A stretch of 64,000 nucleotides of DNA from Macrostomum lignano. Its lineage: Eukaryota. The translations under genes were made by a program, and so were the position numbers. Within the stretch, counting starts at the first letter, position 1; each line of letters opens with the position of its first letter. Shown here in pieces: positions 19,144 through 63,529 of this stretch. The DNA lies in contig NIVC01000197.1 in NCBI GenBank assembly GCA_002269645.1, positions 558,001 through 622,000 on the forward strand. The letters run 5' to 3'. The notes beneath the pieces are model-generated. The model did not search any database and was not told the origin of the DNA. It saw nothing but the letters and a program-made list of their open reading frames with translations.

Positions 19144-19262
19144 TGGATCTGTGCTGCGAAATATTTCACTCCTTTTTACAATTGTTAGAACTGCCTGAAG
19201 TACTCGTACCTTGCGTTGTTAATAACTTCACTTATTTTCAGCCATATTTCCAAATGCTCAGA

Positions 19263-25881: not shown

Positions 25882-25954
25882 GGCCCGTTTATACGTCGTA
25901 GTTGCTTATGCATTGAGATTTATTCTATATACTATTGTTGCAAATGTATTCTGT

Positions 25955-26405
25955 CTGTAGTCTATGGGACTGGATTCTGTCTGTAGTCTATGGCACTGGA
26001 TTCTGTGTGTAGTCTATGGCACTGGATTCTGTGTGTAGTCTATGGCACTGGATTCTGTCTGTAGTCTATGGCACTGGATTCTGTGTGTAGTCTATGGAAC
26101 TGGATTCTGTGTGTAGTCTATGGCACTGGATTCTGTCTGTAGTCTATGGCACTGGATTCTGTCTGTAGTCTATGGCACTGGATTCTGTGTGTAGTCTATG
26201 GCACTGGATTCTGTGTGTAGTCTATGGCACTGGATTCTGTCTGTAGTCTATGGCACTGGATTCTGTATGTAGTCTATGGCACTGGATTCTGTGTGTAGTC
26301 TATGGCACTGGATTCTGTCTGTAGTCTATGGCACTGGATTCTGTCTGTAGTCTATGGCACTGGATTCTGTCTGTAGTCTATGGCACTGGATTCTGTCTGT
26401 AGTCT
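25955..26405. repeat. Minisatellite, 26-bp unit (GTAGTCTATGGCACTGGATTCTGTCT), just 3' of METTL17
   Basis: Direct reading. Confidence 0.95.
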
Positions 26406-28569: not shown

Positions 28570-29206
28570 ATCTAGTCACTCTAGTATCTGACCTATCTAG
28601 TCACTCTAGTGTCTGGCCAATCTAGTCACTCTAGTGTCTGGCCCATCTAGTAACTCTAGTGTCTGACCCATCTAGTAACTCTAGTGTCTGGCCAATCTAG
28701 TCACTCTAGTGTCTGGCCAATCTAGTCACTCTAGTGTCTGGCCAATCTAGTCACTCTAGAGTCTGACCCATCATCTAGTCAATCTAGTGCCTGGCCAATC
28801 TAGTCACTCTAGTGTCTGGCCAATCTAGTCACTCTAGTGTCTGGCCAATCTAGTCACTCTAGTGTCTGGCCAATCTAGTCACTCTAGTGTCTGGCCAATC
28901 TGTCACTCTAGTGTCTGGCCAATCTAGTCACTCTAGTGTCTGGCCAATCTAGTCACTCTAGTGTCTGGCCAATCTAGTCACTCTAGTGTCTGGCCCATCT
29001 AGTCACTCTAGTGTCTGGCCAATCTAGTCACTCTAGTGTCTGGCCAATCTAGTCACTCTAGTGTCTGGCCAATCTAGTCACTCTAGTGTCTGGCCAATCT
29101 AGTCACTCTAGTGTCTGGCCAATCTAGTCACTCTAGTGTCTGGCCAATCTAGTCACTCTAGTGTCTGGCCCATCTAGTCACTCTAGTGTCTGGGCCATCT
29201 AGTCAC
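28570..29206. repeat. Minisatellite, 25-bp unit (TCTAGTCACTCTAGTGTCTGGCCAA)
   Basis: Direct reading. Confidence 0.95.
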
Positions 29207-30016
29207 AGTTTATTTGGCCTTCACGAGCAGGACTCAATCAATGCTAGATAGTGTAATATGTAGAGCTGAGTTGAATAATAGCCGAGTCTTCTAGAGCGCT
29301 CGGATCTCGGCCATTCAACTCATGATCAGTAACATACTTATCATGTAAGTATGTGATAATGTATTTGCCCAGCACAGCTAGATATCATTATTTCACACTT
29401 ATTTTTTTGCTAACGCAAAGACACGGAGGGGTAGATCGATAATAAACGAGGGAAATCAGTCACATGATGAAATCTGTACTCAAGGGTAAAAGTACATCGA
29501 GAAGCAACTGTAAAATAATGGGCCAAAACAAATTGCCATTTTGTCCGGCCGGGTGAAGGTAGATCAATGATATGCTCAGTCATTTTTTGAATAGTAGCCA
29601 CTTTAGTTTTACAATCAGCTGTTAAACGCCGACTTTTCATAGCAGCACTGATAAGCGACTCCATTGGGTGTACATTTAGCAGTGCAGACCAACTTTTGTT
29701 TGGTCTCGTGCAACCGAAGTTTTTTCGTTAGCTACTCGTAATTGATTGAGACCCCAGGAGGCGGGGTTAGTTGGAAAACTGACTCGAATTATTGTAATTT
29801 ATTTGCAAATAGTCTCGTTTCTATGCAAATAAGTTTGCTATAATTAGATTTACAAAATATGAGCTGCACAGAAGCTATAGTCATTAGTCAACCTCCCTGA
29901 TGATGGTCTGGAGTTTGCTAGTCGCTAACTTGGGCTGTATTAACGATGCACTGGTAGAACCGTGTTTAGCAGGGCGATTTATTGGACTCCGTCAGGATTA
30001 AATTGGCAACATCTTT

Positions 30017-31046
30017 GCGCTCCTGTGTCTCATTTGCGCTCCGGTGTCTCCGTGCGCTCCTGTGTCTGTGCGCTCCTGTGTCTCCGTGCGCTCCTGTGTC
30101 TGTGCGCTCCTGTGTCTCCCTGCGCTCCTGTGTCTCCCTGCGCTCCTGTGTCTCCCTGCGCTCCTGTGTCTGTGCGCTCCTGTGTCTCTGTGCGCTCCTG
30201 TGTCTGTGCGCTCCTGTGTCTCTGTGCGCTCCTGTGTCTCTGTGCGCTCCTGTGTCTCTGTGCGCTCCTGTGTCTCTGTGCGCTCCTGTGTCTCTGTGCG
30301 CTCCTGTGTCTCCCTGCGCTCCTGTGTCTCCCTGCGCTCCTGTGTCTCCCTGCGCTCCTGTGTCTCCCTGCGCTCCTGTGTCTCCCTGCGCTCCTGTGTC
30401 TCCCTGTGCTCCTGTGTCTCCGTGCGCTCCTGTGTCTCCCTGCGCTCCTGTGTCTCCCTGCGCTCCTGTGTCTCCGTGCGCTCCTGTGTCCTCCTGCGCT
30501 CCTGTGTCTCCCTGTGCTCCTGTGTCTCCATGCGCTCCTGTGTCTCCCTGTGCTCCTGTGTCTCCCTGCGCTCCTGTGTCTCCCTGCGCTCCTGTGTCTC
30601 TGTGCGCTCCTGTGTCTCCCTGCGCTCCTGTGTCTCCCTGCGCTCCTGTGTCTCCCTGCGCTCCTGTGTCTCGCTGCGCTCCTGTGTCTCCCTGCGCTCC
30701 TGTGTCTCCCTGCGCTCCTGTGTCTCCCTGCGCTCCTGTGTCTCCCTGCGCTCCTGTGTCTCCCTGCGCTCCTGTGTCTCCCTGCGCTCCTGTGTCTCCC
30801 TGCGCTCATGTGTCTCCCTGCGCTCCTGTGTCTCTGTGCGCTCCTGTGTCTCTGTGCGCTCCTGTGTCTCCCTGCGCTCCTGTGTCTCCCTGCGCTCCTG
30901 TGTCTCCCTGCGCTCCTGTGTCTCCCTGCGCTCCTGTGTCTCCCTGCGCTCCTGTGTCTCCCTGCGCTCCTGTGTCTCCCTGCGCTCCTGTGTCTCCCTG
31001 CGCTCCTGTGTCTCCCTGCGCTCCTGTGTCTCCCTGCGCTCCTGTG
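30017..31046. repeat. Minisatellite, 18-bp unit (GCGCTCCTGTGTCTCCCT)
   Basis: Direct reading. The unit has no stop codon in any frame, which explains the six long overlapping ORFs. Confidence 0.95.
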
Positions 31047-31631
31047 CGATCTCTTTGCGCTCCTTGCACCCTTGACTCTCCACCTGACCTTCGCTTTCTG
31101 TCTGTCTCTGGCAGACTATCGCCTCCTCTGCTCCCTGTCCGTTCTCAATTGAGCGTGAGATGACTCAATCGCAGGAGTATTCTCATAAATTTTTAGATGT
31201 GGCAGATATAGGTTTAAAAGGCCGAAACAATATGCAATAACAGCACTCAAGAAAGCTGGCTTGCTCAGAAATTTAATTCTATTTCCCCTTTTCCGATTAA
31301 AAATTGGAATAATTGGTTGAAAGTATAGCAATCTAACGAAGGTTACAACCACCATTTTGTTTTGAGTCTATTGGCATCAACTAGAGCAAATTATGTACGA
31401 CATTTTAGTAATCAAAGGACAACAATAAAAGTTTTTACGAGTACACATGTTTTGTTGAAATTGTGGAAATATCCAGCAAAAAAGAAAGCGAGCCAACAAT
31501 CGTCCGTCGTCTGAGAAGCGCATTGTGCAGGGGTTCAAATTTCAAACGCAAACTGTCGAAGATCTGGGGCTTGAGCCAGCGTTACTTTTTTCTTGTCAAC
31601 TCCCAACGACCACCAGAAAATTCCGAGAACC

Positions 31632-32075
31632 GAGCAACAACCCCTACAAATGAGCAACAACCCCTACAAATAGCAACAACCCCTACAAATGAGCAACAAC
31701 CCCTACAAATGAGCAACAACCCCTACAAATAGCAACAACCCCTACAAATGAGCAACAACCCCTACAAATAGCAACAACCCCTACAAATAGCAATAACCCC
31801 TACAAATGAGCAATAACCCCTACAAATGATCAACAACCCCTAGAAATGAGCAGCAACCCCTACAAATGATCAACAACCCCTACAAATGAGCAACAACCCC
31901 TACAAATGATCAACAACCCCTACAAATGAGCAACAACCCCTACAAATAGCAACAACCCCTACAAATGACCAACAACCCCTACAAATGATCAACAACCCCT
32001 ACAAATGAGCAACAACCCCTACAAATGATCAAAAACCCCTACAAATGAGCAATAAGCCCTAAAAATGAGCAACAA
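31632..32075. repeat. Minisatellite, 19-20 bp unit (CAACAACCCCTACAAATGAG)
   Basis: Direct reading. Confidence 0.95.
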
Positions 32076-32710
32076 CGATAAAAAGCGATCAACAGTCCCT
32101 AGAAACGATCAGCCCGGAACGACTTAACACATCAGCTTTTAAACAGACTGTCACTATAGGCTGACTAATTTCTGAAAAATGCTTAGGTGACAAAGTGCCA
32201 ACTCAATCCATCCAATAGCTGATTCAAGGTGAAAGAGCTAACTCTACAACATACTCTGCAGTGTTTTATCAATAGGAACGGACGATATCACGCCTTCCCC
32301 CTGAGCAGTTGGGAAATTCGAATGGGGCGGACAGCTGCCTGAAACAGGACGCGATCTTCCAGTCTCGGTGCTTTCTGCTCTTCGCCTCCTCCCCCCACAG
32401 ATCACCTGCCGTTTTGTTCATTAAAAAGCTTCCTGCTCTAACCCTGCTCTCTAATGATGCCTTTGGGTCTATCCACTGAGTCAATGAAGCCTCCCATATA
32501 CAGCCTGGGGGGATCAAATGCTCCAGTCTACTCGTAGCCGAAATCCGCTGTCGGACCTTGCTAGTTCGGCTGTACCCCTCCTCAATCTATGGCCAATGTG
32601 GGCGATCCCAGCTGGCTTAGTTCTGAAACAAATGCTTGATTCTGCCTGCTTGAGTCTGTCTGAACCTGCACGCGATACATGTTAGACGGGGTTTGTTTGT
32701 GCTTGTCTCT

Positions 32711-45298: not shown

Positions 45299-45563
45299 TA
45301 TATAGTACTAATGCATATCTATCCTATGTAAGAATTTAATGCTCTAGCATTTATGGCAAGCAATATATAGCTTATGCCAACCCCCAAATCCTAGATTAAA
45401 ATTTGTAGTTTTTATGTTTATCTTGTCTTTATATGATAAACCCATTGGTTTATAAATTTTAGTGAAACTATTATCTAAATTATAGACAAATTATCAGGTT
45501 ATAAAATTTGCAAAGTTGGTTAGTTTGTTAAGTTATAAAAAACTTTTACTTAGTTTAACTAAT

Positions 45564-45811
45564 AGCTCAGCCACCACTATTATATGGTGCAATTGAAGGC
45601 TGCATATGGCTTTTCAGTCCAAGGACTGGAGGGTATCATATACCCCCCTTAATTACCCCAGCTAATGCTGGTACCCATTTTATGGCTGGGTGAACTGAAG
45701 CAATGCAGAGTTAAGTATCTTGTTTAAAGACACAAATTGTTCCCGTGGGATTGGGAATCGAACCTTCAACCTTCAATTTGTGAGTTTGACACTAACCACT
45801 AGGCTACAACC
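45564..45811 (-). mobile_element. tRNA-derived CORE-like SINE, copy 3
   Basis: Same head (AGGCTACAACC on +) and body (AGTCCAAGGACTGG...TTACCCCAGCTAATGCTGG.ACCCATTTT) as copies 1 and 2. Confidence 0.85.
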
Positions 45812-45848: not shown

Positions 45849-48800
45849 ATGCCAATAGGTCTCAGGTAACAATACTTGTTGGGTATTATTTAGAAGCTTA
45901 TTAGTCATTTACCAGTGACTTATTGGGGTATTATCCAGTTTATGGCTTGGCAAAAAGGGCAATCCAATTGGCTCCCAAATTTCTCCAGGAGTTGTCCGAC
46001 GCTCTGGCTCAGGACTGCAGCTCCGGCCTCTCAGCTGCTGGGGCCAGTGGCAACAATGGCGCTGTCGCATCACTAGCCAACAGTGGTGGTGGCAGCGGTG
46101 ATGGAGCGTCATCCAGCAGCAGTCAGCCTGGAAGCACAGTGATAGTCAACTACCTGCCCTCCAGTATAGGCAATAACGAGCTTAAGAAACTATTCGAATC
46201 TGTTGGGCCAACTACTAACTCTATTGTTGTTCGAGATCGAATCACTAAGGAGTCGAAATGCTTCGGCTTCGTCTCCTACGAGTCGCCTAACGACGCTGAG
46301 CGCGCGGTCGAAGTGTTGAACGGTCGCCTAATTCAGGACAAATGCATTCGGGTTGGCATCGCCATACCACAGCAGGAGCTGGGCCACACGGGTTTGTCTG
46401 ATGTCTTTTATTTACCTACAGTCACAATTCCGGATTGTCATGATTTTGTGATTGCCATCAATCGCTGGCATTCACGGAGAGCCTCCATCTCTAGTCAGTC
46501 TCCATCTCTAGTCAGCCTCCATCTCTAGTCAGTCTCCATCTCTAGTCAGCCTCCATCTCTAGTCAGTCTCCATCTCTAGTCAGCCTCCATCTCTAGTCAG
46601 TCTCCATCTCTAGTCAGTCTCCATCTCTAATCAGCCTCCATCTCTAGTCAGTCTCCATCTCTAGTCAGCCTCCATCTCTAGTCAGCCTCCATCTCTAGTC
46701 AGTCACAGAGGGCTCCATCTCTAGTCAGCCTCCATCTCTAGTCAGTCACAGAGGGCTCCATCTCTAGTCAGCCTCCATCTCTAGTCAGTCACAGAGGGCT
46801 CCATCTCTAGTCAGTCACAGAGGGCTCCATCTCTAGTCAGTCACAGAGGGCTCCATCTCTAGTCAGCCTCCATCTCTAGTCAGCCTCCATCTCTAGTCAG
46901 CCTCCATCTCTAGTCAGTCACAGAGGGCTCCATCTCTAGTCAGCCTCCATCTCTAGTCAGTCACAGAGGGCTCCATCTCTAGTCAGCCTCCATCTCTAGT
47001 CAGCCTCCATCTCTAGTCAGTCACAGAGGGCTCCATCTCTAGTCAGTCACAGAGGGCCTCCATCTCGAGTCAACCTCCATCTCTAGTCATTCGCAGAGGG
47101 CCTCCATCTCTAGTCAGCCTCCATCTCTAGTCAGTCACAGAGGGCCTCCATCTCTAGTCAGCCTCCATCTCTAATCAGCCTCCATCTCTAGTCAGCCTCC
47201 ATCTTTAGTCAGACTCCATCTCTAGTCAGCCTCCATCTCTAGTCAGCCTCCATCTCTAGTCAGACTCCATCTCTAGTCAGCCTCCATCTCTAGTCAGACT
47301 CCATCTCTAGTTAGCCTCCATCTCTAGTCAGCCTCCATCTCTAGTCAGCCTCCATCTCTAGTCAGCCTCCATCTCTAGTCAGACTCCATCTCTAGTCAGC
47401 CTCCATCTCTAGTCAGCCTCCATCTCTAGTCAGCCTCCATCTCTAATCAGCCTCCATCTCTAGTCAGTCTCCATCTCTAGTCAGCCTCCATCTCTAGTCA
47501 GCCTCCATCTCTAGTCAGCCTCCATCTCTAGTCAGCCTCCATCTCTAGTCAGTCACAGAGGGCTCCATCTCTAGTCAGTCACAGAGGGCCTCCATCTCTA
47601 GTCAGTCACAGAGGGCCTCCATCTCGAGTCAACCTCCATCTCTAGTCATTCGCAGAGGGCCTCCATCTCTAGTCAGCCTCCATCTCTAGTCAGTCACAGA
47701 GGGCCTCCATCTCTAGTCAGACTCCATCTCTAGTCAGCCTCCATCTCTAATCAGCCTCCATCTCTAGTCAGCCACCATCTCTAGTCAGACTCCATCTCTA
47801 GTCAGCCTCCATCTCTAGTCAGCCTCCATCTCTAGTCAGCCTCCATCTCTAGTCAGCCTCCATCTCTAGTCAGACTCCATCTCTAGTCAGCCTCCATCTC
47901 TAGTCAGACTCCATCTCTAGTTAGCCTCCATCTCTAGTCAGACTCCATCTCTAGTCAGCCTCCATCTCTAGTCAGTCACAGAGGGCCTCCATCTCTAGTC
48001 AGTCACAGAGGCCTCCATCTCTAGTCAGTCACAGAGGGCCTCCATCTCTAGTCAGTCACAGAGGGCTCCATTTCTAGTCAGTCACAGAGGGCCTCCATCT
48101 CTAGTCAGTCACAGAGGGCCTCCATTTCTAGTCATTCGCTGAGTTTCCCCTCTGCTCACCCAGTGAGTGCGGAGTCTGCGGACACCTCATCAGTCCCAAG
48201 TGCACCTGTTCATATCACACCCAAACGCACTGGCAGGCAAGCTGTACGTGGCCGGCTTCCCGGCCTACTGGAACGACAACGAGCTGATGGCGGCATTCAA
48301 GCCCTACGGCCGTATCCTGAGCTCGCGGGTGCTCATCGACCCCAGCACTGGCTTGTCCAAGTGCTCCGGTTTTGTGAACTTTGAAAGCTACCACTGCGCT
48401 GAGGAAGCCGCAAAAGAGCTGCAGGGCAAAGAGTTTGATAAACACGTCATCAAGATTCAGCTGCACAAGCCTGGCGGCGGCGAAGGCATGGGCGCTGGTC
48501 AGAGCGTCGGTCTTGGTGCCAGCAGCGGCCAAAGTAGCGGCCAGGGCGGACATGCGGAGGAGAATCCGGCAGACTGCAATCTGATGGTGAACTTCCTGCC
48601 GGCCGCATTCACAGACGAGGATCTGCGCGACCTGTTTGAAACCATTGGCCAGCTGCGCAGCTCGAAAATTGTTCGCACGCCTGAGGGCGAGTCCAAGTGC
48701 TTCGGCTTTGTCACTTATGTGGCACCGCAGGACGCGGCTAAAGCATCTATTGAGCTTACTGGCCGCCTGATTCAGGGCAAGAAGCTCAAGGTGCAATTTG

Positions 48801-51800
48801 CTAAGCCGGAGATTGCCGAGAATGGCAAGCTGTATATTGGTGAGTAAGATTAGTCAACCATATACGAGCTATTTACTATTTGTGTAGTTTTCTGTGTGGC
48901 TGTTTTGAGACCTGTAGGCGCATTTAGTGGCATATCTACCGGCTTGTGGGAGGTATTTAGTAGCTTATGGGCTTATTTATTAGCTTATGGGGTCTTTAGT
49001 AGCTTTTGGGGTATTTAGTAGCTTATGGGGTCTTTAGTAGCTTATGGGGGTATTTAGTAGCTTATGGGGGTATTTAGTAGCTTATGGGGGTATTTAGTAG
49101 CTTATGGGGTCTTTAGTAGCTTATGGGGGTATTTAGTAGCTTATGGGGGTATTTAGTAGCTTATGGGGGTCTTTAGTAGCTTATGGGGGTATTTAGTAGC
49201 TTATGGGGGTATTTAGTAGCTTATGGGGGTATTTAGTAGCTTATGGGGGTATTTAGTAGCTTATGGGGTATTTAGTAGCTTATGGGGGTATTTAGTAGCT
49301 TATGGGGTATTTAGTAGCTTATGGGGGTATTTAGTAGCTTATGGGGTCTTTAGTAGTTTATTAGGTATTTATTGTCTTATGGGGTATTTAGTGGCTTATG
49401 ATGTATTTTCTAGCTTATGGGGTATTTAGTAACTTATTGGGTATTTATTGTCTTATGGGGTATTTAGTGGCTTATGGGGTATTTAGTAGCTGATAGGATA
49501 TTTAATGGATTAAGGGGGTATTTAGTTGGACATCAGCATCCTTTTATTAGTCTCATCAGTAATATTTAGTAATCCATATTTAGCTGGCCTTGTTTCTCGT
49601 AGTTTAAAAGCATATCTATTTGCTACTCCAGGATTTTTTTGTTTCTTTGGCAGGCAACCTGCCAGAGGGCTACGCGCAGTCGGACCTGGACAAGCTATTC
49701 GACAGCTACGGCCCGCTGAAAGAGTCCAAGCTGCTCATGGACAAGAGGACCGGCAAGTCCAAGGGCTGCGGATTCATTGAACTGTGCAGCGGTCCCCTAG
49801 CAGATATGGCCATCGCCCAGCTCAACGGCCTCCAGCTTGATGGCGCTCCGCAGCCGCTGAAAGTGCACCGGCCGCTGCCTCCGAAGGGCGCCCTGCTGCT
49901 TGGCGGCCAAGTTGGCGCGGCCGGGGTCAGCCCTGTCAATCAGCTGACTGTGAAGCACGAGTTGCTACCTGCCCATATCCGGCCGTTCGGCGTCGCCGCG
50001 GGCCTGCACCCCACCGACGGCCTTCTGTCGCCGCCGAACAAAAAGCGCAGGACTGACACCGCCGAGGAGGCGCTGACCGCCGCCGTGGCCGCGGTGAGAG
50101 GCCGCTGGCCTTGCTGTGCTGCACTGCCCACTAAATCCCTGCAGCACAGTGTTTTAATACCCTTTCCCCTTTAATACCAATCAGTCCATCAAATCCCGGG
50201 TCATTCAGTCCATCAAATCCCGGGGTCATTCAGTCCAAATCCCGGGTCATTCAGTCCAAATCCCGGGTCATTCAGTCCAAATCCCGGGTCATTCAGTCCA
50301 TCAAATCCCGGTTCATTCAGTTCATCAAATCCCGGGTCATTCAGTTCATCAAATCCCGGGTCATTCAGTTCATCAAATCCCGGGTCATTCAGTCCAAATC
50401 CCGGGTCATTCAGTCCAAATCCCGGGTCATTCAGTTCATTAAATCCCGGGTCATTCAGTCCATCAAATCCCGGTTCATTTAGTTCATACAATCCCGGGTC
50501 ATTCAGTTTATTAAATCCCGGTTCATTGAGTTCATACAATCCCGGGTCATTCAGTTTATTAAATCCCGGGTCATTCAGTCCAAATCCCGGGTCATTCAGT
50601 TCAAATCCCAGGTCATTCAGTCCATCAAATCCCGGGTCATTCAGTTTATTAAATCCCGGGTCATTCAGTCCATCAAATCCCGGGTCATTCAGTCCAAATC
50701 CCAGGTCATTCAGTCCATCAAATCCCGGGTCATTCAGTCCAAATCCCGGGTCATTCAGTCCAAATCCCAGGTCATTCAGTCCATCAAATCCCGGGTCATT
50801 CAGTCCAAATCCCGGGTCATTCAGTCCAAATCCCGGGTCATTCAGTCCAAATCCCGGGTCATTCAGTCCAAATCCCGCGTCATTCAGTCCATCAAATCCC
50901 GGGTCATTCAGTCCAAATCCCGGGTCATTCAGTCCAAATCCCAGGTCATTCAGTCCATCAAATCCCGGGTCATTCAGTCCAAATCCCGGGTCATTCAGTC
51001 CATTAAATCCCGGGTCATTCAGTCCAAATCCCGGGTCATTCAGTCCATTCGAACCCACCCGCAGCACCAGCAGCAGCCAAAGCAGGACAAGGGCGAGTTC
51101 CCCCTGTTTGTGTACGGTCTCGGTGACGCGGCCCAAGACATCGACCTGTGGGAGCTGTTCGGCCCCCATGGCGCTGTCAAGTCTGTGAAGGTGATCCGAG
51201 ATGCGGCCACGCAGAAGCCGAGAGGCTACGGATTTGTCACCATGCTCAGGTGAGACCGGCGTCTTTTGTTCGCACTGCGAAAGTTAAATCTTGGTATAGA
51301 CAGTATATAAACTCTTATTATTGTAGAGCGACTCTGAAATCTTCCCAACCCAATCAGAAATCTCCCCAACCCCTCAGAAATCTTCCCCAACCCACTCAGA
51401 AATCTCCCCAACCCCCTCAGAAATCTTCCCCAACCCACTAAGAAATCTTCCCCCAACCCACTTAGGAATCTCTCCAACCCACTCAGAAATCTCCCCAACC
51501 CACTCAGAAATCTTCCCAACCCACTCAGAAATCTTCCCAACCCACTCAGAAATATCCCCAACCCAATAAAAAATCTTCCCCCAACCCACTCAGAAATCTT
51601 CCCCCAACCCACTCAGAAATCTTCCCCCAACCCACTCAGAAATCTTCCCCCAACCCACTCAGAAATCTTCCCCCAACCCACCCAGAAATCTCCCCAACCC
51701 ACTCAGAAATCTTCCCAACCCACTCAGAAATCTCCCCAACCCACTCAGAAATCTCCCCAACCCACTCAGAAATCTCCCCAACCCACTCAGAAATCTCCCC

Positions 51801-52939
51801 AACCCACTCAGAAATCTTCCCAACCCACTCAGAAATCTCCCCAACCCACTCAGAAATCTCCCCAACCCACTCAGAAATCTCCCCAACCCACTCAGAAATC
51901 TTCCCCAACCCACTCAGAAATCTTCCCAACCCACTCAGAAATCTTCCCAACCCACTAAGAAATCTTCCCAACCCACTCAGAAATCTTCCCCCAACCCACT
52001 CAGAAATCTTCCCCCAACCCACTCAGAAATCTCCCCAACCCACTCAGAAATCTTCCCCCAACCCACTCAGAAATCTTCCCCCAACCCACCCAGAAATCTC
52101 CCCAACCCACTCAGAAATCTTCCCAACCCACTCAGAAATCTTCCCAACCCACTCAGAAATATCCCCAACCCAATAAAAAATCTTCCCCCAACCCACTCAG
52201 AAATCTTCCCCCAACCCACTCAGAAATCTTCCCCCAACCCACTCAGAAATCTTCCCCCAACCCACTCAGAAATCTTCCCCCAACCCACCCAGAAATCTCC
52301 CCAACCCACTCAGAAATCTTCCCAACCCACTCAGAAATCTCCCCAACCCACTCAGAAATCTCCCCAACCCACTCAGAAATCTCCCCAACCCACTCAGAAA
52401 TCTCCCCAACCCACTCAGAAATCTCCCCAACCCACTCAGAAATCTTCCCAACCCACTCAGAAATCTTCCCAACCCACTCAGAAATCTTCCCAACCCACTC
52501 AGAAATATCCCCAACCCAATAAAAAATCTTCCTTCAACCCACTCAGAAATCTTCCCCCAACCCACTCAGAAATCTTCCCCCAACCCACCCAGAAATCTCC
52601 CCAACCCACTCAGAAATCTTCCCAACCCACTCAGAAATCTCCCCAACCCACTCAGAAATCTCCCCAACCCACTCAGAAATCTCCCCAACCCACTCAGAAA
52701 TCTTCCCCAACCCACTCAGAAATCTCCCCAACCCACTCAGAAATCTCCCCAACCCACTCAGAAATCTCCCCAACCCACTCAGAAATCTTCCCCAACCCAC
52801 TCAGAAATCTTCCCCAACCCACTCAGAAATCTTTTCCCAACCCACTAAAAATGCCAGGTACTCAGAGGCGGTGGAAGCCGTCAAGAAGGTTAACGGTCAC
52901 CTGCTAGGGGAGAAGCGGCTGCAGGTGCGATTTAAGTGA
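45849..52939 (+). CDS. elav: ELAV/Hu-like RNA-binding protein with five RRMs, ~600 aa: join(45849..45865,45916..46391,48237..48839,49654..50093,51065..51249,52858..52939)
   Basis: Phases are consistent (1803 nt). RRM-a TVIVNYLP...RDRITKESKCFGFVSY; RRM-b KLYVAGFP...SKCSGFVNF; RRM-c NLMVNFLP...SKCFGFVTY; RRM-d KLYIGNLP...SKGCGFIEL; hinge with PNKKRR; RRM-e LFVYGLG...LWELFGPHGAVKSVKVIRD...GYGFVTM...VNGHLLGEKRLQVRFK*, which is the ELAV RRM3 signature. The 17-nt first exon is inferred because exon 2 has no in-frame Met. Confidence 0.9.
46482..48130. repeat. Intronic minisatellite, 17-bp unit (AGTCAGCCTCCATCTCT) with longer variants carrying TCACAGAGGG(C), ELAV intron 2
   Basis: Direct reading. 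Confidence 0.95.
48950..49495. repeat. Intronic minisatellite, 19-20 bp unit (GGGGGTATTTAGTAGCTTAT), ELAV intron 3
   Basis: Direct reading. Confidence 0.95.
50180..51047. repeat. Intronic minisatellite, 21/24-bp units (AAATCCCGGGTCATTCAGTCC[ATC]), ELAV intron 4
   Basis: Direct reading. Confidence 0.95.
51340..52848. repeat. Intronic minisatellite, 21-23 bp unit (CCAACCCACTCAGAAATCTCC), ELAV intron 5
   Basis: Direct reading. Confidence 0.95.
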
Positions 52940-53648: not shown

Positions 53649-54181
53649 TATTCCTCACTTGGGCCTGGCCATAGGCTACAGAGATGTATGTATTTGGCTT
53701 GGCCATAGACTGGAGAATTGTATTTTTAGCTGGACCATAGACTACAGAGATGTATTTTAGCTGGCTTATAGACTACAGAAATGTATTAATTTGGCCTGGC
53801 CATAGACTACAGAAATGTATTTATTTGGCCTGGCCATAGACTAGAGAAATGTATTTATTTGGCCTGGCCATAGACTACAGAAATTTATTTATTTGGCTGG
53901 GCCATAGACTACAGAAATGTATTTATTTGGCTGGGCCATAGACTACAGAAATGTATTTATTTGGCCTGGCCATAGACTACAGAAATTTATTTATTTGGCT
54001 GGGCCATAGACTACAGAAATGTATTTATTTGGCTGGGCCATAGACTACAGAAATGTATTTATTTGGCCTGGCCATAGACTACAGAAATGTATTTATTTGG
54101 CTAGCCATAGACTACAGAAATGTATTTATTTGGCCTGGCCATAGACTACAGAAACATATTTATTTGGCCAAGTGAGGAATA
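53649..54181. repeat. 34-bp minisatellite (TATTTGGCCTGGCCATAGACTACAGAAATGTATT) bounded by a 14-bp perfect inverted repeat
   Basis: Array 53662-54168; TATTCCTCACTTGG at 53649-53662 and CCAAGTGAGGAATA at 54168-54181. Confidence 0.9.
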
Positions 54182-54593
54182 AATACATTATTCCCCCGCT
54201 TGTTTCACTTATTCGTGGCTGCGAAGGGCTCCGGCCATTCTAGTCCTCAGCCGTTCTCGGCCGCAATAAAAGAAACCAGTGGGGTTTAACTTATAATTAT
54301 CGAACATCTGTAAAGCCATTTATTTCTAAAGTGAGTCAGTGAGTGGCACTGCTTGGTTATATTTTCGTTTCACTAATTATTATCAAACAGTTATCCTTTA
54401 CGTGCGTTTTTATTGTTGCAAGTTTTTTTCGATCAAAATATATATAAATTCTTGTTACACATTATATTACTGTTATCAACCAGTTATTAAGCTGATATTA
54501 CGATTATAAAGTTATTCATCTTTTTATGAATTCTTTATTGAATTATAAAAACAATGAACTCCTAAGTAATCAACAATTCAAATTTTTAGTAGC

Positions 54594-54815
54594 GATTTCA
54601 TTGCTGAGTTGCTAAGTGGGGATTTCGTTGCTGAGTGGGGATTTCATTGCTGAATTGCTGAGTGGAAATTTCATTGCTCAGTTGCTGAGTGGGGAGTTCA
54701 TTGCTGAGTTGCTGAGTGGGGAGTTCATTGCTCAGTTGCTGAGTGGGGATTTCGTTGCTGAATTGCTGTGTGGGGATTTCATTGCTGGGTTGCTGAGTAG
54801 GGATTTCATTGCTGA
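54594..54815. repeat. Minisatellite, ~27-bp unit (TTGCTGAGTGGGGATTTCATTGCTGAG-like)
   Basis: Direct reading. Confidence 0.85.
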
Positions 54816-55404
54816 TTAGTACTACGTCTTATTAATTAGTACTACTTCTGTATTTTTCGGGTGGGCATTTTTGTGACTTACCTTGTGTGGGCTCGGCCGG
54901 GTGCTGCGCATGTGGGACCCTAAATATCAAAACCAAATTCTTAATGTTTCTTCTCATAACTTCGAAAAATTTGAAGTTTTTGATGCACGGAGAGGTTAAT
55001 TATCGCATTTATTTTTAATCGATTGCTACCTGTTAAGTATGACCTAGTTTAAGCTACTAATAGTAGGCGGATTTAGATCATTTAGAATTGTTTTGATTTA
55101 ATAAAAACTATTGTCAACATAACTAGTCTTCCTGTATCCAGTGTTAGTTAATGAACAAACTTTTCAACTTTCTAACCCATTTTACATGGTCCATTGTGTG
55201 CTAAAGCATTTCGCCATTGTACAGAAATATAAGCGTTAGTCCATAGTTTTTCCAGTTTTTACTGATGAGCCTGAATCCGTTCGTCTGCGAATTATGGATG
55301 GCATTATAATTCGGTGTGAGTTGCGTTCAGCTTGACTTGGGAATCGAATAAATCTGCAAATACTGCAATTAATTCAATTGAGTTTGAAGTATCTTCGCTA
55401 GGCC

Positions 55405-56110
55405 CATCTCAGATCCCAAATCTTCGCTAGTCCCATCTCTGATCCCAAATCTTTGCTAGTCCCATCCCTGATCCCAAATCTTTGCTAGTCCCATCCCTGA
55501 TCCCAAATCTTAGCTAGTCCCATCTCTGATCCCAAATCTTTGCTAGTCCCATCCCTGATCCCAAATCTTTGCTAGTCCCATCCCTGATCCCAAATCTTTG
55601 CTAGTCCCATCCCTGATCCCAAATCTTCGCTAGTCCCATCTCTGATCCCAAATCTTCGCTAGTCCCATCTCTGATCCCAAATCTTTGCTAGTCCCATCCC
55701 TGATCCCAAATCTTTGCTAGTCCCATCTCTGATCCCAAATCTTAGCTAGTCCAATCCCTGATCCCAAATCTTTGCTAGTCCCATCCCTGATCCAAAATCT
55801 TCGCTAATCCCATCCCTGATCCCAAAAATGGACGCTAATCCCATTCCTGATCCCAATTCTTCACTTATCTTATCTCTGATCTCAATCCTTCACTAATCCC
55901 ATCCCTGATCCCATCCTTGATCCTAAAACGTTTCGCTAATCCTATCTTGACCAAAACTATGTCCCTAATCTCATCCCTGATTAAAATTCTTCACTAACCT
56001 TATCTCTGATCTCAATTCTTCACTAATTCCATCCTTGATCCCAAAACGTGTCGCTTATTATCCTATCTATAATCGCAAATCTTCAGTAATCCCATCCCTG
56101 ATCCAAAATC
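55405..56110. repeat. Minisatellite, 29-bp unit (GATCCCAAATCTTTGCTAGTCCCATCCCT), decaying after about 55860
   Basis: Direct reading. Confidence 0.9.
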
Positions 56111-56654
56111 CCAAGTGACGCATTCAATTCCAAAATTCTGAAATCTGCAAAGCTAGCCTAAATAATCCTATAAACTTGTGTAAAGTTATAGAGAACGGTC
56201 ACACCATACACTGATAGTGCAGTGCACTATCAGTCAAATTTGAGTATGCATGCAGCAGCTTGAAGCCAATAAAGCATTTACCATGCCGCTGCAGACTCGA
56301 ACCCTGCGCGCAGCTAAGGCCTCGGCAGCTCGGCCAGTCATGCGCACTTATCAAACACATCGGATCCTCTCTAGTAATAGTGCATTTCTGCTGCTGCAAT
56401 AGAGCCTGCGCGGGAAGGGTTCCGGGAATTCGATTGGGGAATTTGATTTTTAGTCCTCACCCCTGCACCGTCGGCAGTGCGTGATCGATGATTCTACAGT
56501 CAGCGGGTGGCGCGACGGTCCGGCATTCCGACAGGCCGAATGCAAATCCGCTTTTTTCTGCTCGATTTCTCTTCCCCTGCCTCATTACAGCCCTGCTGTG
56601 CCCATGCTGCCTGCAGGCTGCTCACTGCGGTATCACTCTCCTAGCCTCTCATGC

Positions 56655-57097
56655 ACTCTCACTCACTCACTCACTCACTCACTCACTCACTCACTCACTC
56701 ATTCACTCACTCACTCACTCACTCATTCACTCACTCACTCACTCACTCATTCACTCACTCACTCACTCACTCACTCATTCACTCACTCACTCACTCACTC
56801 ACTCATTCACTCACTCACTCACTCACTCATTCACTCACTCACTCACTCACTCACTCACTCACTCATTCACTCACTCACTCATTCACTCACTCACTCATTC
56901 ACTCACTCACTCATTCACTCACTCACTCATTCACTCACTCACTCACTCACTCATTCACTCACTCATTCACTCACTCACTCATTCACTCACTCACTCACTC
57001 ATTCACTCACTCATTCACTCATTCACTCATTCACTCACTCACTCATTCACTCACTCACTCACTCATTCACTCACTCATTCACTCACTCATTCACTCA
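56655..57097. repeat. (TCAC)n/(TCAT) microsatellite
   Basis: Direct reading. Confidence 0.97.
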
Positions 57098-57571
57098 CCA
57101 TTTTTAGTATATGGGATTGTTCTTCTGCACTGTTTTGTATTCTCAGAATATTTCGCCATGTTTTGCACCGGACCAATCTCATGCCAAAATAATAATTACT
57201 ATAAACATTCTGATCGGGCAAAGAAAGACGTTTTTTGCATCCGAAATCTCGGTCTCGCCGATCCGATCTGGAATGGGCCCCAGCCGGAATTTGCATACGG
57301 CGGCCTTCAATAGAGGAAAAATGAGGCCAACAGCACGAGGGATTGTAGATGGAGGAATACGTACAGGCTCGAGTGCTCTTGGGAATCGGTGCATGCTAAT
57401 TGGCCTCCAGGCCATCGCGTCTGTCCCGTCAGTGCTCAGTAGACAGCTGGTGTTTTATATTATTCCCAAGTAGCTGCGCCCAACTCTGGACTGTGATTTA
57501 TCTCCTAGCCCAAGAATGCTTCTAAAATGAAACACCTTAACACTTTTCATGAGGGGGATTTCATTTTTTGA

Positions 57572-57732
57572 CTGGGCGCCAGTTCTATAGAGGCGCCAGT
57601 TCTATTGGCGCCAGTTCTAGAGGCTCCAGTTCTAGTGGTGCCACTTCTAGAGGCGCCAGTTCTATAGAAGCGCCAGTTCTAGAAGCGCCAGTTTTATAGG
57701 GGCGCCAGCACCAGAGACGCCAGCACCAGGGG
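57572..57732. repeat. Short degenerate array of GGCGCCAGTTCTA-type units, ending in GGCGCCAGCACCAG
   Basis: Direct reading. Confidence 0.8.
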
Positions 57733-58463
57733 CTCATACTGTCGATCAGACTCAAATTGAATCACACCTTTTAGTTGAGGAACATCCCCACGGCCTACTG
57801 CTATAAATATCCGACCAATTTAGGCTGTCTAAGCAGTCGGAGTTGAAGAATGCAGCGGCAGAGGAGAGCTGCAAGTTGGATGGGCGCGCCGTGCACTCGC
57901 GCGGCACAAGCAGGCCGGTGCTCCATCGACCCAGCCAATGCCAGCTTGGCAGAATCTGCTTCCCCACAAGCCTTCTGTCCTGAAGTGCGCTCAATCTCTT
58001 CTTCCTTCCCGCTTCTCTGTCTCGTCTCTTGTGTCTCCCCCTGCCCCAGTCTGTCCGCTGTCTCTCCCTTGACCCCTAGATAAGCAGCCGGGTGCATGAG
58101 TGATGGCTCGAGTGCGACTAGAGGATCTTCTTATTCTAGCGCGCACACACAAACACAAATATATATATATATATATATAGCTAGCTATATAGAACAGGGA
58201 GATTTCCTGTTTCCGCTATCCTCTTTTCCTATCCCAGCAGTCAGCACTGGCTGTGCTGTTGGACCTCCGGTAGCCCTAGCAGTGCAACAGCGCTCCCAGC
58301 TCCGCTTCCTGTCCCTATTCGGACTGTGCCGTCATCTCTGCACGCAGCTTTGGTTGGCCTCTATATAGCTACTCGTAGCTAGCGGGCTGTAGATATAGCT
58401 GTGAGATAGTTCAAGCCAGACAGCAGGGCCAAGAATCTGCTGACCCAGTTCCGCCTGTCAATC

Positions 58464-59006
58464 ATGCTCATATGGCCAATCCATCTGGACATCGCTCTGC
58501 TGTTCATAGCTCTGCTGGTTGTGTCGTTTGTCTGCTACCACTGCCGCCACCGGCGCAGCCGCTGCGAGCGGGCCGCCCAGCTGGCCCGGGGTTTTCAGCG
58601 CCGAACCCTTCGCCAGCAGGGCAGCACGGCTGGGCAGCAGCCGGCCCATCACCATCATCGTCACGAGCTCGTGCTGGACATGGGATCATCTGGCTTCGAG
58701 TTTGGCGGCGGCGGCGGCAGCGGCTGCGGTGGCGGCGGTGGCATCGGAGGCGGTGGCGGCATCGGCGGCGGTGGCGGCGGCCTAGACCGGGACTGCACCT
58801 ACTCCTCAGCCTCTAGGCACCATCATCACCATCGGAGAGGCGGTGGCGGCGGGGGTGGCGGCGGAGGCGGCAGCCAACAGATGGGCGCCGGCGGAACGGG
58901 CGGTGGCGCAGGCGGGGGAGGCGGCATCGGCAGCAGCAGCGGCGGCGGCGTCAATCTTATTTTCGGCCACTTTGGCGCGGGCCGAGCATCAAGACCGGAT
59001 GGCTGA
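58464..59006 (+). CDS. Hypothetical 180-aa single-pass membrane protein with a Gly/His-rich low-complexity tail
   Basis: ATG start; hydrophobic stretch IALLFIALLVVSFVCY followed by the Cys/Arg-rich CYHCRHRRSRC; poly-Gly and His runs; GC-rich codon usage like the real exons in this window. No recognisable family. Confidence 0.45.
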   Translation: MLIWPIHLDIALLFIALLVVSFVCYHCRHRRSRCERAAQLARGFQRRTLRQQGSTAGQQPAHHHHRHELVLDMGSSGFEFGGGGGSGCGGGGGIGGGGGIGGGGGGLDRDCTYSSASRHHHHHRRGGGGGGGGGGGSQQMGAGGTGGGAGGGGGIGSSSGGGVNLIFGHFGAGRASRPDG

Positions 59007-59198
59007 CCGCTCTGAGTTTAGTGATTGTCAGACTGCTTTAATCTCTGGGATTTCACCATCGAATCATGCGATCACTGCAATTTATTAACATTCTGATGAT
59101 GTACAGTTTTCAAGGTGCGATGCAACTGCCAAAATATATTCTGTTACGTAATATTGTGCACAAGCTGCGTGTGCTTATGTCTAGATTATCTAGCATTA

Positions 59199-59592
59199 AC
59201 TGGGCGCCAGTACCAGGGGCGCCAGCACCAAGGGGCGCCAGCACCAAGGGGCGCCAGCACCAAGGGGCGCCAGCACCAAGGGCGCCAGCACCAAGGGGCG
59301 CCAGCACCAAGGGGCGCCAGCACCAAGGGGCGCCAGCACCAAGGGGCGCCAGCACCAAGGGGCGCCAGCACCAAGGGGCGCCAGCACCAAGGGGCGCCAG
59401 CACCAAGGGGCGCCAGCACCAAGGGGCGCCAGCACCAAGGGGCGCCAGCACCAAGGGGCGCCAGCACCAAGGGGCGCCAGCACCAAGGGGCGCCAGCACC
59501 AAGGGGCGCCAGCACCAAGGGGCGCCAGCACCAAGGGGCGCCAGCACCAAGGGGCGCCAGCACCAGGGGCCAGCACCAGGGGGCGCCAGCAC
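59199..59592. repeat. Minisatellite, 16-bp unit (AAGGGGCGCCAGCACC)
   Basis: Direct reading. The 16-aa periodicity of the overlapping ORFs equals three units. Confidence 0.95.
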
Positions 59593-60039
59593 CCTGGAGC
59601 AGCTTGAGCAAATGGTTAGCACACGGAGCAGCTCAGTGGTGAACGCGTTCAAATGTCGTGCCCTAAAGTTACCGGGTTCCTGCCTACGCATCTCCGTGTG
59701 CGAGAGCGCGCTCAGTGGTCAGCAGAATTTGCTTGCCTGCTTGCTGGTTGGCTGCGGCTAAAGGTAGCCTTGATTTGGCATGGTGCCTTCATGCCCGCTG
59801 CAAACTACTAGTAGCTAAACTAAACTCCAAGCACAGCGCGATGCAATTTTCTTCTCTCGTCTCTGAATTTCTTACTCTCTTGACTGTCCACCTCGAGCCC
59901 CGTGGAACATCCTCTGCCTCCCTGCACCTGCTGAATGTACATTGAAATGCACGTAGGAGTTCGCATTGATCTGTTAATCAGCTCTCTGTATTTCAATCCC
60001 CAGCCATGACAGCCTAAAGTACAGTTAAGTTATTCCTTA

Positions 60040-60183
60040 CAGGGTCGTAGCCAAGGGAGGGGGGTCATGCCCCCAGCCGGCTGATCCAGGCCAAATGCGG
60101 CAGCAACCCCCCTCCCCCGTCGCAGAGGCCTAGCACCCCCTGCCCCCTCCCCCCCCCAGAAAGAAATCCTGGCTACGCCACTG
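60040..60183. mobile_element. 144-bp hAT-type MITE with an 8-bp TSD
   Basis: Ends CAGGGTCGTAGCCA / TGGCTACGCCACTG; flanks ATTCCTTA (60032-60039) and ATTCTTTA (60184-60191); G-rich then C-rich interior. Confidence 0.75.
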
Positions 60184-61181
60184 ATTCTTTACAAAATGAT
60201 CGAAAATGAGAATGAAGAGTTTACCCACTTTGAACAGCTTAATGCGCTTTCAGAGGAAATTGTTTTAATTATTAGTTAAAACCAATAAATTAAAGTAATC
60301 CACGCTTGCTTGATATGGAACTTTGTCTTTAATATCCATGTAGAGAACTGATGGCCACATGGACCTGCACAGTTAAAGTACATTCAATACTTAGTCTAAT
60401 ACACTCGTAGCTTGCTCGCACATCGAGTCCGATCTGGCTCAAGTTTGAGTAGCTTTCACTTCACACACTCTCCTCTCTCTCTCTCTCTCTCTCTTAATTT
60501 GGGTAATTATTATTAAAGGTACTCCCATGGTTTGCCTCTGTTTCTACTAGGCTTCGGTGCAGCTCGACTCGACAAAGTTATATTAGACTTGTAAAATTTT
60601 ATTCGTTATTTATGACAGGACAATTAATTATTTAGACGATTTGACTGGAGTGTACGATTTTAAAACTTTATAGTTTTATTGCCACATTGGAGATGCTGCT
60701 GGACTCACCCGTTCCTCATGTCAGTCTTTTTAAGTCAGCCGAGAAATCGATTTTCTAACATATTGTGCGAAGCACATGCACTATGAGTATAATAGAAATC
60801 ATTGCAGTGCCCCAAGCACCAGCCAATTTCAAGCTTTTCACTGCAGCGAGCGCTCGGTCACGTGTGGAATAGAGAGCTGATGAAGCTGCAGTGCTCTAAA
60901 AGACCTCCCACTGAGCCTGACAGAGGGCTTATTCTCTTTCTCTCATCTTGCTCGCCTCGCCTCTTTCTTTCGTTCTTGGAACTGAACGGCTAATTAGATC
61001 CGCTATCCTCAGCTCCTCAGCCTGAGGCAGCTGTGCTGCCAGCCTCCCATCGCCCTCTGCCCATCCCGGTTCCTGGCTGAATCAATGTTTGGCCGGGGGC
61101 AGGCGACTCCGGCTAAATGGAACTGGCCTGAGAAATAAATTGCCGGAATCGGGGGCACTGCATGAGAACTGACGGGAGGTT

Positions 61182-61345
61182 GCAGTGGCTTACAGGACAC
61201 TGAAGAGAAGTTGCGGTGGCTTACAGGACACTGAAGAGAAGTTGCGGTGGCTTACAGGACACTGACACTGACGGGAGGTTGCGGTAGCTTACAGGACACT
61301 GACGGGAGGTTGCAGTGGCTTACGGAGGGACACTGACGGGAGGTT
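61182..61345. repeat. Short tandem array around G(T/C)GGCTTACAGGACACTGA
   Basis: About five related units read directly. Confidence 0.8.
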
Positions 61346-62389
61346 GCAGCGCCTCACTGACGAGATGTCTCACGTCTCACGGGAGGATTGACCGAGAAGC
61401 AGGAGCCCTGCCATTCCAGAAGCTGAAATATCTTGACACTCAATCAGTAAGCTTTTCTACCGGCAATAGTATTGGGTTGGCAAGGGGATTAATAAATACT
61501 TTATGAACAAAGGCGAGGCTGATTAACTCCGCGCCGCAGATCCCCTTAGCGCGGAGGCCCGTCCGGTAAATCCCTTTAGCGGCTTCCACGGGTCAGATGG
61601 ATTCCATGGTAAGAAGGCTCTGCCAAAATCCTAGAAAATCTTTGGGGATTCTTTGAGGAACCCCGTCGGCGTCATGCAGTGTGGCATGACAGGGAAAGGG
61701 ATTTTTCCTCCGCGGTTATAGGCGAGATTGTTGGCAGGGGATTTGAAGTGGGCCACGCATGGCGGGCTGGAGCTGCGGCAGGCTCGATTCCGCCAAGGTT
61801 CACCATGCAGTGTCGGGGAGGATGGAGGTTCCTCTAAAAAATCTCTAAAATATCCCATAGACACCAACAGAAGAAGGGGCTGAAATATCCAGGCTGGGAG
61901 GGGGGTAGAAATCGAGGGATTTCTGTTTACCGTGGAATCGATAGCCCAGCAGAGATAAGGGAGACGAGGAGGAGTGGCGCAAAGAGTGGCGCGGGAGAGA
62001 GCTGAGGGCAGCTTGAAAGATTCCAGCAGAATTGCCTGCTACTTCCATGCGAGTCCCATGGCGCTGAGCTGTTCAGGTCCGAGAGACAGTGGAGAGCAGG
62101 AGAGAGTCTCAGCTGTCAGCGAGTGCTTGAAAGTTTGGAAAGATTTGCAGAGAGTGTATATGCATTGGTCTTTACAATGGGCTGAGCCTTCTTTCAACTT
62201 AATTTAAGCAGGAACTAGCTCAACTAACATCATCTGCTGAGGCAGGATTAACCAAAACATTATGAAGCTTTGTGAAAACTCTAGAATATTTTAGTAAAAG
62301 CAAAAGAAGAAAAAGGATCTATCTAAAATAAATCGATTCGATTACAGTGTAAAAAATTGATCGATGCTTGATTAAAGTGTTATTCAGGT

Positions 62390-62951
62390 CCAGTTCAAGT
62401 TTGTCCGGTTCAGTTCTGTCCGGTTCAAGTTTGTCCGGTTCAAGTTTGTCCGGTTCAGTTCTGTCCGGTTCAAGTTTGTCCGGTTCAGTTTTGTCCGGTT
62501 CAAGTTTGTCCGGTTCAGTTTTGTCCGGTTCAAGTTTGTCTGGTTCAGTTCTGTCCGGTTCAAGTTTGTCCGGTTTAGTTTTGTCCGGTTCAAGTTTGTC
62601 CGGTTCAGTTCTGTCCGGTTCACGTTTGTCCGGTTCAGTTCTGTCCGGTTCAGTTTTGTCCGGTTCAAGTTTGTCTGGTTCAGTTCTGTCCGGTTCACGT
62701 TTGTCTGGTTCAGTTTTGTTCGGTTCAGTTTTGTCCGGTTCAAGTTTATCCGGTTCAGTTCTTTCCGGTTCAAGTTTGTCCGGTTCAGTTCTGTCCGGTT
62801 CAGTTTTGTCCGGTTCAAGTTTGTCTGGTTCAGTTCTGTCCGGTTCAAGTTTGTCCGGTTCAGTTTTTTTCGGTTCAGTTCTGTCCGGTTCAAGTTTGTC
62901 CGGTTCAGTTCTGTCCGGTTCAGGTTTATCCGGTTCAGGTTTGTCCGGTTC
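62390..62951. repeat. Minisatellite, 15-bp unit (TCCGGTTCAAGTTTG / TCCGGTTCAGTTCTG)
   Basis: Direct reading. Confidence 0.95.
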
Positions 62952-63529
62952 CGCTTTACGCAAAATGAAAGCTACATTTACATCCCATCCAGTGTGCACA
63001 TGATGTAATTATTTCATTATGTATTTTTGGGTGCTGATCCTCGAAGCATTGAGCTCAAATTAAATCGATATTTGGCCTCCAGGCAAAATGCAAAGTAATT
63101 TACATTTTCGACAATCGAATGTTTACATGTATATGCCCAATTATGTACTTTCTATTTAACGAGTAAACCCAGAGTTCATATTGACTTTAAAGCAGCAATC
63201 CAGGGCGGAGCCATTATTGAGCTGTAATTTAATATAATTTGCATGACGATCTACAGACTGCCGGGATTCAAGCATTCAGAAATTACAATCGCCTCCTCTT
63301 TATACACATGCAGTTTGTAGCGGATAAATTATGCAGGGTTCAAATCGAATATGATTGCCTACACGCTTGCGAAGGGAATGCTCAACTATAATTTGATATA
63401 TTCGGACTAAAAATCTGCTGTGTGCTGCTGCTGCTTCAGCATCTTTTGCTTTTTCAGCCATTTATTTCAGCCATAATTTTCATTAAAATCAGCCGAGGAG
63501 TCTTGTGAAAGCAAAGGAAGTCTCATGGA

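Follow-up and report, generated by a model that had tools for sequence, protein, structure and literature searches.

The flatworm Macrostomum lignano carries, on contig NIVC01000197.1 of assembly GCA_002269645.1 (Mlig_3_7), a gene for an ELAV/Hu-like protein with five RNA recognition motifs (RRMs). The DNA analysed here is positions 558,001 to 622,000 of that contig (64,000 nucleotides, hereafter the window, to which all coordinates refer), and the region of interest lies on its forward strand between 45849 and 52939. A first-pass annotation, made from the letters alone, had proposed that the RRM1-RRM2 module of an ELAV/Hu protein is present twice in tandem at this place. The annotated gene is BOX15_Mlig024422g1, and its product PAA88307.1 (P0001; "hypothetical protein, partial", 570 aa) spans window positions 45989-52939. 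When the gene model was rebuilt from the sequence, the spliced exons 45916/45989-46391, 48237-48839, 49654-50093, 51065-51249 and 52858-52939 formed a single open frame ending in a TGA stop at 52937-52939, every intron began with GT and ended with AG, and PAA88307.1 was found to be residues 31-600 of the 600-aa splice model with zero differences.

Gene organization

All coding exons are on the plus strand, and exon numbers below count the mini-exon 45849-45865 of the first-pass annotation as exon 1, so that 48237-48839 is exon 3. The first annotated coding exon (45989..46391) opens with a low-complexity N-terminus, continues with RRM-a, of ELAV RRM1 type, at 46136-46363, and breaks off in the a-b linker after the first base of a Gly codon; it is followed by a phase-1 intron (46392..48236) that consists nearly entirely of a 17/27-nt minisatellite (46480-48134). 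The next exon (48237..48839, 603 nt) is symmetric, phase 1-1. It carries RRM-b, of RRM2 type, up to 48472 and RRM-c, of RRM1 type, at 48578-48808, with a Gly-rich linker between them (48473-48577); the c-d linker follows, and the exon closes with strand beta1 of RRM-d, 'KLYI' (48824-48839). A second phase-1 intron (48840..49653), filled with a 20-nt minisatellite (48952-49526), precedes exon 49654..50093. This exon completes RRM-d, a domain of RRM2 type that runs to 49874, and contributes the greater part of the hinge, within which lie a predicted helix and, at about 50031-50054, the conserved basic motif SPPNKKRRT. After a phase-0 intron (50094..51064; 21/24-nt minisatellite, 50181-51048), the hinge ends in exon 51065..51249, which also encodes the initial two thirds of RRM-e, of ELAV RRM3 type, beginning at 51098, and after a phase-2 intron (51250..52857; 21-nt minisatellite, 51331-52846) the last coding exon (52858..52939) completes RRM-e and ends with the stop codon.

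Domain architecture and family assignment

Pfam RRM_1 matched the protein in five separate stretches (E = 6e-87), and the domain order read in the first pass was recovered together with its motifs in the rebuilt protein: RRM-a (VIVNYLP), a 9-residue linker, RRM-b (KLYVAGFP), a 35-residue Gly-rich linker at the b-c junction, RRM-c (LMVNFLP), a 5-residue linker, RRM-d (KLYIGNLP), an 84-residue hinge, and RRM-e. The a-b and c-d linkers have ELAV-like lengths. The PNKKRR hinge and the ELAV-type RRM3 signature that had been pointed out are both there, the former as SPPNKKRRT and the latter as DLWELFGPHGAVKSVKVIRD in RRM-e. An AlphaFold2 model built from a 31-sequence alignment contains five complete beta-alpha-beta-beta-alpha-beta domains (predicted local distance difference test scores, pLDDT, about 75-92), a disordered N-terminus, Gly-rich linker and most of the hinge, and a helix before RRM-e; the aromatic positions of RNP1 and RNP2 are kept in all five RRMs.

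Among NCBIfam profiles (curated cut-offs: TIGR01661 ELAV_HUD_SF 279.1 bits, TIGR01659 Sex-lethal 486.2 bits, TIGR01628 PABP 497.1 bits), the whole protein scores highest on TIGR01661 (345.4 bits, a value inflated by the second tandem), as do tandem 1 (RRM-a and RRM-b) alone with 138.5 bits (profile positions 5-155) and tandem 2 (RRM-c and RRM-d) alone with 123.5 bits (positions 4-165). Tandem 2 plus hinge plus RRM-e (residues 278-600) scored 213.1 bits in one colinear stretch covering positions 4-345 of 351, and many ELAV proteins of 320-400 aa align end to end with this part. In a HMMER scan of 1.84 billion representative proteins, two Macrostomum entries (P0002, 900 bits; P0003, 728 bits) stood far above the next match (198.7 bits). 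The best 150 matches included 88 canonical three-RRM ELAV-like proteins, most others being PABP-like four-RRM or larger multi-RRM proteins, and the best named matches outside Macrostomum were ELAV-like 2/3 proteins from a rotifer, a frog, mammals and Trichinella. Type-specific profiles were built from the 88 three-RRM ELAV-like matches and 12 PABP-like matches; they assign RRM-a to ELAV RRM1 (E1, 93.9 bits), RRM-b to ELAV RRM2 (E2, 75.7 bits; next, PABP RRM3, 64.6 bits), RRM-c to E1 (87.5 bits), RRM-d to E2 (76.2 bits) and RRM-e to ELAV RRM3 (E3, 106.9 bits; at most 57 bits on any other). The best solved structures were the RRM1-2 pairs of HuC/HuD/HuR for tandem 1 (E = 6e-34) and of HuD for tandem 2 (E = 1e-32), the latter ahead of Sex-lethal (Sxl) RRM1-2 (E = 2e-25); RRM-d matched Hu RRM2, and RRM-e matched RRM3 of Drosophila ELAV (E = 7e-22) and of HuR. 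In trees, all of them neighbour-joining, either tandem alone attached to ELAV plus Sxl with 82-89% bootstrap, and a split of the two tandems, ELAV and Sxl from PABP/CELF received 58% (Kimura distances) or 86% (score distances).

Some results fit an ordinary ELAV assignment less well. The three-RRM-equivalent part, at 213.1 bits, stays below the TIGR01661 cut-off of 279.1 bits, and we therefore call the protein a divergent member; in ten sampled ELAV-like reference proteins TIGR01661 was likewise the top family (10/10), with six above and four below the cut-off. RRM-b is ambiguous in the solved-structure comparison (HuC RRM2, 70.7 bits; RBMS1 RRM1, 70.5 bits). ELAV/Hu proteins have exactly three RRMs, and here there are five RRM_1 domains.

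A multi-RRM protein of PABP, CELF or RBMS type that merely resembles ELAV could be proposed from this ambiguity, from the position of RRM-b near PABP RRM3 in a neighbour-joining tree, from the RNP1 sequence 'SKCFGFV(S/T)Y' of RRM-a and RRM-c, which is the CELF RRM3 motif, and from a word-based homolog search that was dominated by CELF and PABP proteins (the same kind of search with RRM-e alone gave no match). We regard this as very improbable, however, since the type profiles point to ELAV, as do the solved-structure matches and the tandem trees, and RRM-e is matched by the ELAV RRM3 profile far better than by the others. On the PABP profile TIGR01628 the protein reached 233.7 bits, less than half of the cut-off, PABP-type profiles lose to ELAV-type profiles in every domain, and Pfam gave no match to a PABC domain (PF00658) in the five-RRM protein. 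CELF/Bruno proteins are laid out as RRM1-RRM2, a long divergent linker and an RRM3 of CELF type; the named ones are parted from the tandems by the 86% split and share with them only the KCFGFV motif of RNP1; as for Sex-lethal, TIGR01659 scored 223.3 bits and an RRM3 is present. Profile, solved-structure and colinearity evidence agree with the first-pass view: the protein is ELAV/Hu-like, its RRM1-RRM2 tandem occurs twice, and a hinge and an RRM3 of ELAV type follow.

A single gene with five constrained domains

The 603-nt exon by itself holds everything from RRM-b through the Gly-rich linker and RRM-c to the first strand of RRM-d. Because the two tandems meet inside one exon, they can be neither separate genes nor mutually exclusive exons, and the first-pass reading of one protein with both modules in frame stands. 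The exon layout and splice-site flanks recur at two other loci of M. lignano, Mlig024422g2 and Mlig029559g1, again with intact open reading frames (ORFs); exons of the three loci are 97.6-100% identical, with synonymous to non-synonymous codon differences of 9:1 and 7:2. The five RRMs are also encoded together, in an ORF of 536 aa without interruption, by the Logan contig L001 (1739 nt, run SRR30276804). Its product is 74% identical to the M. lignano protein in a BLASTP local alignment and 79% in the stretches matched by phmmer, and the type-specific profiles give it the same E1-E2-E1-E2-E3 calls. The segments of the contig that match the window meet precisely at the exon 2/3 and 3/4 junctions of M. 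lignano, and L001 is most simply read as a complementary DNA from a related species. At the start of the contig, positions 1-19 are a remnant of an Illumina adapter (ACGTGTGCTCTTCCGATCT), and the next 35 nt, before an acceptor-like site, look like unspliced upstream sequence and not like a spliced leader.

An artefact of annotation or assembly, in which two neighbouring genes or a mis-joined locus imitate a five-RRM gene, is extremely improbable: the locus is rich in minisatellites, which can mislead assemblers, but RRM-b and RRM-c are contiguous in one exon, and the structure recurs at three independent loci and in a contig of another species.

Purifying selection acts on all five RRMs, as judged from non-synonymous to synonymous rate ratios (dN/dS) between M. 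lignano and the L001 species, which are approximate since synonymous sites are saturated. The ratios are 0.04 for RRM-a, 0.05 for RRM-b, 0.10 for RRM-c, 0.12 for RRM-d and 0.02 for RRM-e, as against 0.39 for the N-terminus and 0.34 for the Gly-rich linker. The hinge segment DGLLSPPNKKRRTD-AEEALTAAVAAH is almost invariant between the two species, and the tether between the tandems is poorly conserved.

Evidence opposed to a single five-RRM product comes from UniProt entry A0A1I8H7L7 (P0003), in which exon 2 is joined straight to exon 4, the 603-nt exon and the last exon both being missing. This entry is exactly an a-d-e product, and since the exon is a multiple of 3 in length and lies between two phase-1 introns, skipping it keeps the frame; exon 48237-48839 might then be a cassette exon, the main product having three RRMs and the five-RRM form being a minor isoform. 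We consider that improbable. Skipping would delete the beta1/RNP2 strand 'KLYI' of RRM-d and leave 'GHTGNLP', it would remove RRM-b and RRM-c, both under strong purifying selection, and the exon is present in the contig from the related species. Contig records exist for the three PAA proteins of the current Mlig_3_7 annotation but for neither A0A1I8H7L7 nor A0A1I8IQN9; the former also lacks its last exon, and the latter has a garbled N-terminus. From their accession series we infer that both are older automatic gene models. The exon skipping of A0A1I8H7L7 was accordingly set aside as isoform evidence and treated as a probable prediction artefact of an old annotation. The other entry, A0A1I8IQN9 (P0222), has 1124 aa, of which about 590 residues are a spurious N-terminus joined to a mis-spliced RRM-a.

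Origin of the second tandem

The two tandems are colinear and 38% identical over 163 residues (a-c 45%, b-d 33%). With this identity and with the conservation of both copies seen in dN/dS, the first-pass statement that the modules are old, substantially diverged and both retained holds. In tandem-level trees (158 sites) they are sisters with 72% bootstrap under Kimura distances and 72-74% under BLOSUM score distances. They also have in common 11 rare residue states (states present in under 10% of 88 ELAV-like proteins), whereas the maximum shared with any single ELAV (n=88) is 8 and the mean is below 3. These data make an old internal duplication of the RRM1-RRM2 segment likely, and such a duplication would be older than the split of M. 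lignano and the SRR30276804 species. The extra tandem would probably have arisen with breakpoints upstream of RRM1 and downstream of RRM2; such breakpoints would account for finding RRM-b, the junction linker and RRM-c in one exon and a phase-1 intron at the start of each RRM2, and the exon layout fits a tandem segmental duplication of this kind.

Several observations pull the other way. The tandems resemble each other (38% identity) no more closely than they resemble the best canonical ELAVs (41-43%), so that the pairing of the tandems could partly be long-branch attraction. In single-domain neighbour-joining trees (79 sites), RRM-a and RRM-c are sisters inside the RRM1 cluster (38% bootstrap), but RRM-b and RRM-d do not pair (2%) and RRM-b drifts toward PABP RRM3; the per-RRM phylogeny asked for in the first pass thus unites a with c and leaves b apart from d, and the proposed duplication is backed at the level of the tandems and not by the second pair of single domains. 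The introns 46392-48236 and 48840-49653 are both of phase 1 and each splits a Gly codon at beta1 of an RRM2-type domain (RRM-b and RRM-d), yet their positions are offset by 5 codons, as had been noticed in the first pass and was seen again in the rebuilt splice model. A Brachionus ELAV gene is intronless, and the introns of wombat ELAVL3 lie in beta2/beta3 loops and at the end of RRM1, none at RRM2 beta1; an ancestral ELAV intron can therefore not be assigned to the M. lignano positions, and the offset introns speak neither for nor against duplication.

The same points may be arranged into a gene fusion, in which the RRM1-RRM2 region of one ancient ELAV paralog came to lie in front of another, complete paralog. 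The resemblance of either tandem to canonical ELAVs roughly equals its resemblance to the other tandem, tandem 2 with hinge and RRM-e is by itself a complete colinear ELAV, b and d are not sisters in the single-domain trees, and M. lignano does have further three-RRM elav genes, melav1 and melav2 (PMC2795745). Set against a fusion are the sisterhood of the tandems at 72-74% bootstrap, the excess of rare residue states common to both, and the finding that in the 1.84-billion library, M. lignano included, no protein is nearer to either tandem than generic ELAVs are. We judge a fusion unlikely, and think it probable that BOX15_Mlig024422g1 is one genuine gene, expressed in Macrostomum, whose product is a divergent ELAV/Hu protein of the layout RRM1-RRM2-Gly-rich tether-RRM1-RRM2-hinge-RRM3, in which the tandem was most likely duplicated internally.

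Start of the coding sequence

The first-pass annotation had extended the gene in the 5' direction (45849..45988, plus strand) by an ATG exon at 45849-45865, a 50-nt GT..AG intron at 45866-45915 and the sequence 45916-45988. This extension is formally possible but unsupported; the public coding sequence (CDS) begins at 45989 and is flagged partial, and there is no in-frame ATG between a stop at 45902 and RRM-a. It is more likely that 45849-45988 is an outron or other upstream sequence ending in the trans-splice acceptor tttctccag (45980-45988). The three M. lignano loci agree in having an annotated, 5'-partial CDS that opens at 45989 or one codon later, directly after 'tttctccag', and in L001 the similarity to M. 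lignano likewise begins just after an acceptor-like 'aattttcag'. The spliced leader (SL) of M. lignano, CGGTCTCTTACTGCGAAGACTCAATTTATTGCATG, ends in ATG (PMC8629364), and this terminal ATG joined to 45989 gives the in-frame sequence MELSDALAQD.... Given the missing in-frame ATG, the partial CDSs behind an acceptor, the ATG at the end of the leader and the acceptor-like site of L001, the transcript is probably SL trans-spliced at 45989 with an AUG start donated by the leader (MELSDAL...), and the locus is a clear candidate case of a start codon supplied in this way. Farther upstream, at about 45560-45810, neither ARAGORN nor Rfam found a tRNA or a short interspersed element.

Minisatellites in the introns and the window

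Each of the four large introns is nearly wholly its own minisatellite with units of 17-27 nt, and lengths vary up to seven-fold across the three gene copies: 1845/1273/2212, 814/889/556, 971/276/1296 and 1608/539/225 nt at the three loci. The locus thus displays fast-changing minisatellite introns beside nearly invariant exons. Some 20 more unrelated minisatellite arrays (periods 12-37 nt, lengths 0.4-1 kb) occur in the window at 1-468, 18029-32076 and 53662-63000; twelve of them, at 18-32 kb, stand a few hundred bases apart and look like another gene with repeat-filled introns.

Proposed function

In the complexes of HuD, HuR and Sxl, RRM1 and RRM2 together enclose about 8-11 nt of U-rich RNA. 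By analogy, each tandem of the M. lignano protein may form an ELAV/Sxl-type cleft for a short U- or AU-rich stretch, and the disordered tether of 23-35 residues would let one polypeptide hold two sites, with higher avidity, recognition of a longer or bipartite element, or bridging as possible outcomes. RRM-e and the hinge would keep their usual ELAV roles, and the KKRR motif of the hinge suggests nuclear import. As a working model we consider it most likely that the protein binds RNA bivalently in the ELAV manner and has a motif for nuclear import in its hinge. More tentatively, this genus-restricted ELAV paralog might act as a covalent double reader, whose two independently evolving tethered clefts recognize U-rich elements that are bipartite or far apart, or hold two RNAs at once, and so replace, in a single chain, part of the cooperative multimerisation needed by three-RRM ELAV proteins; we think this possible, although doubtful. 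If true, such a double reader would be a natural test of how the number of tandems sets ELAV target selection. Among the matches examined, ELAV-like proteins keep very constantly to three RRMs (88 of the best 150 matches). The affinity, footprint and cooperativity of ordinary ELAV proteins depend on multimer formation, and a conserved five-RRM version offers a natural experiment relating the number of RRM1-RRM2 clefts to affinity, footprint length and cooperativity. M. lignano is tractable by transgenesis and RNA interference, so the role of the gene is directly testable.

Comparison with known systems

Compared with the ELAV/Hu proteins (HuR/HuB/HuC/HuD and Drosophila ELAV/FNE/RBP9), the M. 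lignano protein is alike in its three RRM types and their order, the short RRM1-RRM2 linker, the hinge and the RRM3 signature, and differs in having the RRM1-RRM2 tandem twice, making five RRMs, and in the RNP1 of both RRM1-type domains, which is KCFGFV here and LGYGFV in ELAV/Hu. Drosophila Sex-lethal, with its two RRMs only, has a closely related RRM1-RRM2 tandem and, unlike the M. lignano protein, no RRM3. The nearest precedent in principle is PABP, whose four RRMs form two pairs that are thought to stem from internal duplication, but it differs in its RRM types and in a PABC domain, which is absent here. RRM pairs are also repeated in P0041, P0108 and P0110 of the representative library, which are either proteins of PABP type or fused gene models; P0041 has RRM1-RRM2 four times. 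Repetition of RRM tandems therefore occurs outside ELAV as well.

Within M. lignano, melav1 and melav2 are other three-RRM elav genes (Sekii et al. 2009, PMC2795745), and share organism and family with BOX15_Mlig024422g1. Of these, melav2 encodes a protein of 422 aa with three RRMs that is needed for spermatid differentiation (PMC2795745). Identity of the present gene with melav2 was rejected on that size and RRM number and because the published melav2 primers are absent from the window; BOX15_Mlig024422g1 is a distinct, undescribed paralog. A literature search found no description of a five-RRM ELAV protein or of a flatworm ELAV duplication, and nothing relevant on Mlig024422. No other protein with the E1-E2-E1-E2-E3 layout was seen among the best 150 matches from the 1.84 billion representatives. 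The five-RRM layout is a genuine and conserved variation on ELAV architecture that has so far gone undescribed; public annotation already lists the protein as hypothetical. A partial likeness in metagenome/Logan data (Logan, JGI and ENA) is seen in P0065 and P0079, for which ELAV_HUD_SF is also the top family and whose four RRMs are arranged as RRM1-RRM2-RRM2-RRM3; their extra part is one RRM2-type domain, while that of the M. lignano protein is a whole second tandem.

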